Positions 1,734-33,209 of a DNA stretch of 64,000 bases are shown here, piece after piece. The stretch's first letter is position 1; the number at the start of each line of letters is the position of its first letter. The position numbers were made by a program, and so were the translations under genes. This stretch comes from Callorhinchus milii (lineage: Eukaryota). Under the pieces are notes generated by a model. That model saw only the letters and a program-made list of their open reading frames with translations, did no database searches and was not told the DNA's origin. The stretch spans positions 25,854,001 through 25,918,000 of the forward strand of contig NW_024704746.1 of NCBI RefSeq assembly GCF_018977255.1, given 5' to 3'.

Positions 1734-1840
1734 GAAGGTACTAAAAGGGTCTTCAAGAGAGCCAAGAGATCACCAGAGGAACTGAAAGCCGCCATGCGCT
1801 ATCAAAACATTAGCTCCCACATGGCAACTATTATCCAAAA
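1734..1840 (+). CDS. C3orf20-like 5' exon (ATG at 1794 in GCCGCCATG context; frame is also open from the acceptor at 1734)
   Basis: CAG|GAAGG acceptor and AA|GTAAGA donor; [16 protein letters not shown]; phase 2 matches the next exon. Confidence 0.6.

Positions 1841-33209: not shown

Follow-up and report, generated by a model that had tools for sequence, protein, structure and literature searches.

The C3orf20-family gene and its exons

We analyzed a 64,000-nucleotide stretch of the genome of the chimaera Callorhinchus milii (contig NW_024704746.1, positions 25,854,001 to 25,918,000; hereafter, the window), which carries a multi-exon gene of the C3orf20/FAM194 family on the + strand, together with METAP2, VEZT, and FGD6. 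A first-pass annotation of the window had described such a gene, and our searches bear out its family, strand, and multi-exon structure. The FAM194 domain (Pfam PF14977) was matched at positions 17211 to 17420 with an E value of 6.8e-9 and a score of 35.8 bits, compared to a cutoff of 27 (profile positions 28 to 76 of 202), meaning that one exon alone passes the Pfam gathering score. A weaker match at 17673 to 17912 (profile 79 to 114, 14.7 bits, under the cutoff) continues the profile in the next exon. In tblastn searches, 15 family proteins aligned as collinear + strand pieces from 2.3 kb to 30.3 kb. Outside FAM194, collinear similarity extends over an N-terminal LENIL.YSW motif, a DW..YYR helix, and a C-terminal CPV.LR…C.C…TDLE.D…GKLLFA block.

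We analyzed the gene exon by exon, with a separate search for each. Thirteen exons with AG/GT borders and compatible phases provide 735 in-frame codons with zero stops, and 11 of the 13 match family proteins at E ≤ 0.01 (15 family proteins by tblastn, 41 by blastp). The 18 exons and open frame of about 954 amino acids (aa) reported earlier were not reproduced; what stands is the 13 exons and their 735 codons. The exons (E1 to E13) and two candidate pieces are as follows.

1734 to 1840, + strand: E1, on contig 1; acceptor AG at its start, in-frame ATG at 1794, leaves 2 nt
2269 to 2759, + strand: E2, on contig 1, with the conserved N-terminal motif; tblastn match to 15/15 queries, best E 6e-18
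15080 to 15148, + strand: E3 (…INFSM…CREK); splice sites, phase compatible with E2 and E4
15841 to 15940, + strand: E4; RNA contig joined to E5, splice sites, tblastn E 0.037 to P0003
16577 to 16804, + strand: E5; RNA contig, tblastn match to 15/15 queries, best E 1e-17
17264 to 17416, + strand: E6, FAM194 core; Pfam E 6.8e-9, RNA contig, 53-65% identity to all groups
17759 to 17879, + strand: E7, FAM194 continued; RNA contig joined to E8, weak Pfam match (profile 79-114), tblastn
19822 to 19953, + strand: E8; RNA contig, tblastn best E 3e-13
22186 to 22299, + strand: E9; splice sites, phase 0/0, weak tblastn match (E 0.034), blastp match to 7/41 homologs
22886 to 23045, + strand: E10; tblastn match to 15/15 queries at E < 1 (best 4e-4), strong acceptor, GTAAGT donor
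24711 to 25002, + strand: E11, start of the thioredoxin-fold domain (CPVALR…C.C…TDLEYD…); splice sites, tblastn
26352 to 26468, + strand: E12; tblastn best E 4e-10, phase 0/0
30188 to 30330, + strand: E13 (ends …DFKF); tblastn best E 3e-16, leaves 2 nt
31955 to 32053, + strand: weak candidate C-terminal exon piece; tblastn to the tails of P0053 and P0054 (E 0.059), borders unset
33000 to 33209, + strand: weak candidate last exon piece; tblastn E 0.43 to P0058 on 33000-33056

Support differs among the exons. The blastp matches of E1 are confined to four of four amphibian homologs, at a mean identity of 47.7%. E2 has the acceptor ctgcag and the donor GTGAGT, and its phase is compatible with both E1 and E3. 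The E3 motif resembles the family's TINFS.SSK.C by eye, and blastp at E ≤ 0.01 gave no match for this exon. At the other end of the gene, E11 matches Heptranchias P0005 (tblastn E 2e-32) and lungfish P0017 (1.9e-32), and E13 is 60 to 69% identical to proteins of all vertebrate groups (blastp).

E10 leaves one base, whereas E11 requires two, and the model must therefore lack one or more exons in between; we looked for such an exon and could place none. Directly after E13, no splice-compatible exon with the expected motif was found. An open frame at 32994 to 33206 is followed by a stop, which is where the first-pass annotation had ended the gene. Past the E13 donor (30331 to 30373) the frame also stays open, reading RYSTAFIHF…, where sturgeon P0010 has RYSLAFLHM; the open frame may reflect conservation at the start of the intron or a short alternative 3' end.

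Transcripts and a U12-type intron

Sequencing run X5 contains spliced contigs that correspond to part of the gene. We call this run RNA-like on the basis of those contigs, no run being on record as RNA; the contigs give neither expression level nor strand. A contig of 1447 nt joins 15839-15940, 16577-16804, and 17264-17412, which are E4|E5|E6, and a contig of 311 nt joins 17756-17877 and 19820-19954, which are E7|E8. The 2- to 3-nt offsets between RNA and model are mostly bases that fit either side of a junction, the exception being the start of E7. The longer contig extends 961 nt further 5'; E3, E2, and E1 together amount to 667 nt, leaving 294 nt.

The intron between E5 and E6 has GT-AG termini and is removed exactly in the RNA contig.

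16805 to 17263, + strand: U12-type intron (E5|E6), splitting a Tyr codon as TA|T; starts GTATCCTT, with TCCTTGAC 13 nt before the AG

C3orf20 is itself listed with a U12 intron, GT-AG in human and AT-AG in mouse, in a table of PMC1557818. The legend of a supplemental figure in the TOGA2 preprint gives intron 5 of C3orf20 (4930590J08Rik) as a U12 AT-AG intron that splits TA|C, also a Tyr codon.

Neighboring genes in the window

The C3orf20-family gene stands head-to-head with METAP2 and tail-to-tail with VEZT, and it lies upstream of, and co-oriented with, FGD6, about 26 kb from the large FGD6 exon with VEZT between.

6883 to 12400, - strand: METAP2 exons, with the last exon at 6883-7203 and the exon for residues 53-89 at about 12290-12400; Peptidase_M24
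35135 to 45360, - strand: VEZT exons, with Vezatin pieces at 41975-42193, 43205-43474, and 45049-45360
59350 to 61788, + strand: FGD6 large N-terminal exon, an 812-aa open frame

For METAP2, phmmer against PDB matched residues 392-478 (E 1.3e-55) and residues 53-89 (E 0.0022). The Vezatin domain (Pfam PF12632) was found in three of the five open reading frames tried, with E values of 4.8e-8, 3.2e-7, and 4.1e-15. The FGD6 exon is 100% identical over 812 aa to the UniRef entry for Callorhinchus milii FGD6 (P0084) and 59% identical to shark FGD6. With METAP2, Vezatin, and FGD6 exons all identified, the earlier placement of the gene inside a METAP2-VEZT-FGD6 block, in the same orientation as FGD6, holds. 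A single N stands at 58871, just upstream of the large FGD6 exon.

An assembly gap and a false duplication

The 5' part of the C3orf20-family gene is spread over two contigs that overlap each other and are separated by an assembly gap. We distinguished the following pieces from the runs of N and from a comparison of the window with itself.

5168 to 5192, no strand: assembly gap of 25 N between the two mutually overlapping contigs; N runs and self-comparison
1 to 1566, no strand: block A, copy 1, with a second copy of the METAP2 exon at about 30-140 (- strand); 100% identical over 1566 bp to 12260-13825
12260 to 13825, no strand: block A, copy 2, with the METAP2 exon at about 12290-12400 (- strand); self-comparison
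4960 to 5167, no strand: block B, copy 1, abutting the gap; 100% identical over 208 bp to 14706-14913
14706 to 14913, no strand: block B, copy 2; self-comparison
13826 to 14705, no strand: segment X2, 880 bp, the contig 2 counterpart of 1567-4959 in contig 1; no unique similarity to contig 1

Contig 1 (1-5167) is therefore a second version of 12260-14913 with another middle, namely 3393 bp (1567-4959) that hold E1 and E2. The two copies of block A give the same - strand METAP2 translation, and no part of the window encodes METAP2 residues 1-52, a further K/R run being absent from the - strand; the 5' part of METAP2 is probably represented twice in the assembly. Because blocks A and B are duplicated across the gap, the letters on either side of it are not continuous, and because the contig with E1 and E2 duplicates part of the next contig, the scaffold wrongly puts METAP2 inside the C3orf20-family gene. 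As scaffolded, E1 and E2 lie on the far side of METAP2, outside the METAP2-VEZT interval. The statement that the gene lies between METAP2 and VEZT is accordingly correct for E3 to E13, and the false duplication at the gap puts E1 and E2 beyond it. We regard the earlier observation as partly confirmed, largely right yet made on a misassembled scaffold.

Positions 14050-14705, within segment X2, are covered in two DNA-like runs from different samples (runs X1 and X2) at depths of 9.7 and 9.0, compared to 5.6 to 15 on other unique pieces. A contig of 749 nt matches 14050-14705, followed by 93 nt that do not match 14706 onward. We infer that both middles (1567-4959 and segment X2) are real and that the junctions at 1566/1567 and 14705/14706 are false. 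A reading in which the two middles differ only as haplotypes was also considered; it seems less likely, given that segment X2 is at full depth in two samples. Between the two middles there is probably an unassembled piece with a bidirectional promoter, which would contain METAP2 exon 1 along with the first coding exon of the family; the latter (F-F-D-Q motif) was not found in 1-2300 or 12200-15200. Positions 54001-56000, between the 5' ends of VEZT and FGD6, form the window's only G+C-rich stretch (0.53), as expected for a shared CpG-type promoter, and the lack of such a stretch between METAP2 and the C3orf20-family gene is consistent with a missing promoter piece.

Two further observations were made in the window. 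Run X5 also holds an unspliced 488-nt contig (depth 13) at 14119-14605, inside segment X2, which could derive from transcription of a METAP2 intron or of the promoter, or from DNA present in this run. A repeat of about 320 bp has three copies that are 98.7% alike (3657-3982, 50910-51233, and 53081-53397), and related copies are spread over introns, with contig depths reaching 1e5 to 1e6 on such repeats in the DNA-like runs.

The arrangement at the gap raises the question of whether the gene model is partly an artifact, with E1 and E2 coming from another copy or haplotype, or with a gene that is decaying in its 3' part. E1 and E2 do sit on a separate contig whose ends duplicate contig 2, segment X2 replaces them in contig 2 at normal depth in two DNA-like runs, and neither the 3' exons nor the E10-E11 interval could be modeled. 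However, the phase of E2 fits E3 exactly, the N-terminal motif of the family is present in E2 with the correct order and strand, and the extra 5' sequence of the longer RNA contig is long enough for E3, E2, and E1 with sequence to spare. Given in addition that no stop interrupts the 735 codons, we consider an artifactual model unlikely.

Homologs, copy number, and trees

We searched 1.84 billion representative sequences with the FAM194 exon using phmmer and obtained 52 matches. The closest relatives are elasmobranch proteins annotated "C3orf20-like" or with LOC numbers, found in 12 species with one match each among 22 matches. A bird protein retrieved 112 homologs, again with one locus per species among the matches listed. 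The family also occurs in bichir, sturgeon, gar, bowfin, teleosts, lungfish, amphibians, turtles, crocodilians, lizards, and birds, and the mammals with a family gene include felids, dog, mustelids, bats, bovids, cricetid and other rodents, tree shrew, and mouse lemur. These relatives are annotated "C3orf20 homolog," "C3orf20-like," or with LOC numbers, and the description of the gene as probably unnamed is therefore wrong. No Callorhinchus milii protein of the family surfaced in three protein-homolog searches, and ERICH6/ERICH6B are not among the named matches of the exon search at E ≤ 0.001.

Two results bear on copy number. The exhaustive exon search reached a homolog in the protostome Priapulus (E 6e-5), and only one vertebrate type was among its matches. 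Among the matches listed in the exon, elasmobranch, and bird-protein searches, we found no second family copy in any one species. In buffalo and golden jackal, adjacent partial LOC models lie on one contig, which we read as split models of one gene. Bovid and dog models are short or split into adjacent LOC genes, at 355 to 726 aa, compared to 829 to 890 aa in cats and mustelids (P0276, P0300-P0302, and P0309-P0320), which may point to decay, or to poor gene models, in part of the mammals.

The two trees that we built, with 50 and 41 rows, mirror the species tree; no search returned a human, ape, monkey, mouse, or rat sequence, and the rows come from other species. One row of the first tree, P0042, was rejected as a bacterial false match. 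In the 41-row tree, support was 100 for mammals, 99 for amniotes (mammals and sauropsids), 99 for tetrapods, and 100 for elasmobranchs; with the Priapulus homolog as outgroup, the tree gave no resolved base. In an approximately unbiased (AU) test, run like the others under LG+F+G4 with fast searches, forcing mammals outside the other bony vertebrates was rejected (delta log likelihood 47.65, p-AU 0.0008). An earlier AU test that included the outgroup was uninformative (p 0.20), the long Priapulus branch just shifting to mammals. When searched apart, the window's exons were 44 to 56% identical to chondrichthyan proteins, 48% to lungfish, and 38 to 44% to mammals, and in the FAM194 core the window has one of two elasmobranch insertions (one residue).

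Linkage to FGD6 across species

We scored the family gene and FGD6 as linked when the two proteins were recorded on contigs of equal size in the same species. The two share a contig in 12 of 12 comparable species: seven of seven elasmobranchs (Heptranchias, Heterodontus, S. torazame, Mustelus, S. canicula, Leucoraja, and Narcine), the pigeon Columba guinea (one 8,726,943-bp contig), the skink Lerista edwardsae (one 4,955,999-bp scaffold, with locus tags 003879 and 003908), and three of three mustelids (Mustela erminea, Lutra lutra, and Neovison vison). A 13th pair, from sterlet, was unequal, and its two records come from different assemblies. FGD6 linkage is general in the sampled species, mammals included. 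The tight METAP2-gene-VEZT-FGD6 order may not hold in squamates, given the spacing of the skink locus tags.

In birds, the family genes lie on contigs of 176 to 226 Mb in six of six species, which we take to be chromosome 1, carrying FGD6, with FGD5 on other chromosomes. The cat, dog, buffalo, and zebu contigs likewise fit what we assume to be the chromosomes homologous to human 12 (cat B4, dog 15, and buffalo 4, which equals cattle 5+28). In cat, dog, buffalo, and birds, FGD5 presumably lies elsewhere than on these chromosomes.

The first-pass annotation had proposed that the window gene is a probably unnamed ohnolog, retained in this lineage while mammals lost it, which would make the C3orf20 genes of bony vertebrates all orthologs from the FGD5 side. 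The position of the window gene agrees with this, as does the adjacency of human C3orf20 and FGD5, which the annotation had stated and which a table in PMC4139850 supports by listing rs853334 as "FGD5, C3ORF20 intergenic." A chondrichthyan clade that is sister to bony vertebrates is also what this proposal predicts. Its central claims are contradicted by the linkage data. Because FGD6 linkage extends to mammals, on common chromosomes in all three mustelids, and relatives occur in the other mammals named above, the gene was not lost in that group; and because a single gene was found across elasmobranchs and bony vertebrates, on the FGD6 contig in every comparable species, it was not kept in this lineage only. 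Bony-vertebrate members that group with the mammalian "C3orf20 homolog" sit on FGD6 scaffolds (8.7 Mb in the pigeon and 5.0 Mb in the skink), and the large bird contigs point the same way if they are chromosome 1. We therefore consider this proposal, taken as a whole, very improbable. The earlier interpretation is nevertheless partly supported, since its account of the block was correct and its claim of paralogy with the human gene may be correct too.

Protein architecture

We examined the domain layout of the family on models of orthologous proteins. The AlphaFold model of Heptranchias P0005, built with 40 aligned sequences, has a mean predicted local distance difference test (pLDDT) score of 58.5 and two confident domains. 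Residues of about 515 to 650 form a thioredoxin fold, for which Foldseek returned 21 matches at E ≤ 0.001, almost exclusively thioredoxins or fusion constructs that contain one; the comparison with 3vfi_A (VIA) gave Z 11.1 and a root-mean-square deviation (rmsd) of 2.2 Å over 103 residues. The window counterpart of this domain is E11 to E13 (24711-30330), and Pfam has no model over this conserved C-terminal block. No CxxC is present at the active-site position (the N terminus of helix 2), where the window reads VVSSEQGRD and the family consensus is CV.SS.

The FAM194 part, in a model of fragment P0045 (pLDDT 69.6), is predicted to be a 13-strand single-layer beta meander. Foldseek gave no match to this beta domain at E 0.001, and searches of PDB sequences with the hamster ortholog and with a family profile found no relative. 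The ESM Atlas returned family-level clusters only. On the models, the orthologs combine an N-terminal motif with the 13-strand single-layer beta sheet of FAM194, a long helix, and the thioredoxin-fold domain.

From these folds, the protein would be a noncatalytic scaffold or adaptor rather than a redox enzyme. An excerpt of PMC9028963 describes human C3orf20 as a chromosome 3 gene of unknown function with testis expression. As a guess from that expression, and as a hypothesis only, the protein might act most likely in germ or ciliated cells.

Relation to human C3orf20

We think it likely that the window holds a real, transcribed C3orf20/FAM194 gene that is the chimaera copy of a single family gene of every sampled jawed vertebrate, linked to FGD6 wherever a comparison could be made. 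Several points weigh against this conclusion or narrow it. The gene is in none of the trees, and its placement comes from per-exon identities and one indel. Equal contig size amounts to no more than chromosome-level linkage in the sharks and mustelids, the skink locus tags are 29 apart (P0236 and P0136), and the local order described here is that of the window alone. Of the exon junctions, E4|E5|E6 and E7|E8 have RNA support, and E1 to E3 and everything after E8 are without it. The 3' end and the E10-E11 stretch are unmodeled, so the word "intact" in the earlier description applies to 13 exons only; the FAM194 assignment, which was also part of that description, is above the Pfam cutoff on one of them. 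With respect to the protein, the matches of the FAM194 beta domain are weak (CPAP G-box Z 7.1, MORN4 Z 5.9, and axonemal chains Z 4.7 to 5.8, none ≥ 8), and function is deduced from folds and human expression.

How the window gene relates to human C3orf20 is a separate matter. One reading is that jawed vertebrates have two C3orf20 ohnologs: an FGD6-side gene, which is the window gene and extends from chimaeras to cats, dogs, bats, and some rodents, and an FGD5-side gene, which is that of human and mouse, the FGD6-side gene having been lost in human and mouse. We lean toward it as an outcome of the two rounds of vertebrate whole-genome duplication (2R) because block paralogy explains both positions without coincidence; our confidence in it stands at the midpoint. 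If it is true, the FGD6-side gene is routinely mislabeled "C3orf20 homolog," a corollary that we hold with the same evenly balanced confidence. What weighs against this lean is the exhaustive exon search, which reached a protostome and returned no second vertebrate type; two ohnologs would require that the human-type protein escaped that search.

The same result is what a single gene would produce. In that case, the window gene would be the plain C3orf20 ortholog at its ancestral position beside FGD6, and the gene would have moved beside FGD5 in the human/mouse lineage. A single copy in every sampled species, a tree that resembles the species tree, and the rejection of mammals outside the other bony vertebrates all fit this account, as do the many relatives that their sources label "C3orf20 homolog" and the U12 intron with a split Tyr codon, reported as the same feature for human and mouse C3orf20 in the table of PMC1557818 and the figure legend of the TOGA2 preprint. 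However, FGD5-side status is not shown for any mammal used in the AU test, and in three mustelids the gene is on FGD6's contig; the result therefore has no bearing on the human gene. A single gene would also require a coincidence, namely a move to a site immediately upstream of the ohnolog of its former neighbor and in the same orientation. Finally, human, ape, monkey, mouse, and rat have no protein among the 112 homologs of the bird protein, whereas mouse lemur, tree shrew, hamster, vole, and deer mouse do; only 100 query words were sampled in that search, and a miss proves little. We treat a single, moved gene as possible but doubtful, and we continue to lean toward two ohnologs.

Significance

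In the literature, judged from search results rather than full texts, we found no treatment of the evolution of C3orf20 and no paper that names C3orf20 together with METAP2. The locus described here gives the C3orf20 family a second, well-conserved genomic address, and it raises the question of which gene humans carry, this one at a new site or its 2R counterpart. In the latter case, ortholog tables, names, and the transfer of knockout results (mouse compared to dog, chicken, or fish) concern different genes, and under two ohnologs, most cross-species "orthologs" of human C3orf20 would be hidden paralogs. The family now has a testable predicted architecture, a single-layer beta sheet with a thioredoxin fold that lacks the redox motif. 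In addition, the false duplication at the gap shows how such errors can hide a gene.

Comparison with known systems

The closest proteins are the elasmobranch "C3orf20-like" or LOC proteins (Scyliorhinus canicula LOC119973234, Heptranchias perlo, and Mustelus asterias LOC144507548), at 44 to 56% identity summed over exons. They share with the window gene the one-residue insertion in the FAM194 core, and they lie on the FGD6 chromosome in seven of seven species. They differ in being only about half identical and in having a second insertion that is absent from the window, as expected for a holocephalan sister lineage. ERICH6 and ERICH6B, which are FAM194A and FAM194B, share the Pfam FAM194 model.

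Human C3orf20 is presumably upstream of, and co-oriented with, FGD5. The window gene is like human C3orf20 (mouse 4930590J08Rik) in that its close relatives carry the same family name, it has a FAM194 domain, and it lies upstream of, and in the same orientation as, an FGD5/6-class gene, here FGD6. In both, a Tyr codon is split by a U12-type intron where the YPSG exon begins, and the window intron is GT-AG, as the table of PMC1557818 gives for human. The difference lies in the neighborhood: the human gene neighbors FGD5 on chromosome 3 according to the table in PMC4139850, whereas the window gene is found by VEZT and FGD6.

Thioredoxin folds that lack the redox motif provide a third comparison. 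The modeled C-terminal domain of P0005 resembles them with Z scores of 10 to 11 and rmsd values of 2.2 to 3.4 Å, and DIM1/U5-15kD (1qgv, Z 10.3) and DIM2 (1xbs, Z 10.8) are among its matches. It differs from thioredoxin-fold proteins in sequence, at 7 to 16% identity, and in setting, since the C3orf20-family domain is embedded in a protein of 750 to 1000 aa. In comparison with catalytic thioredoxin, the fold is matched on the ortholog model, whereas the CxxC is not matched in the window.

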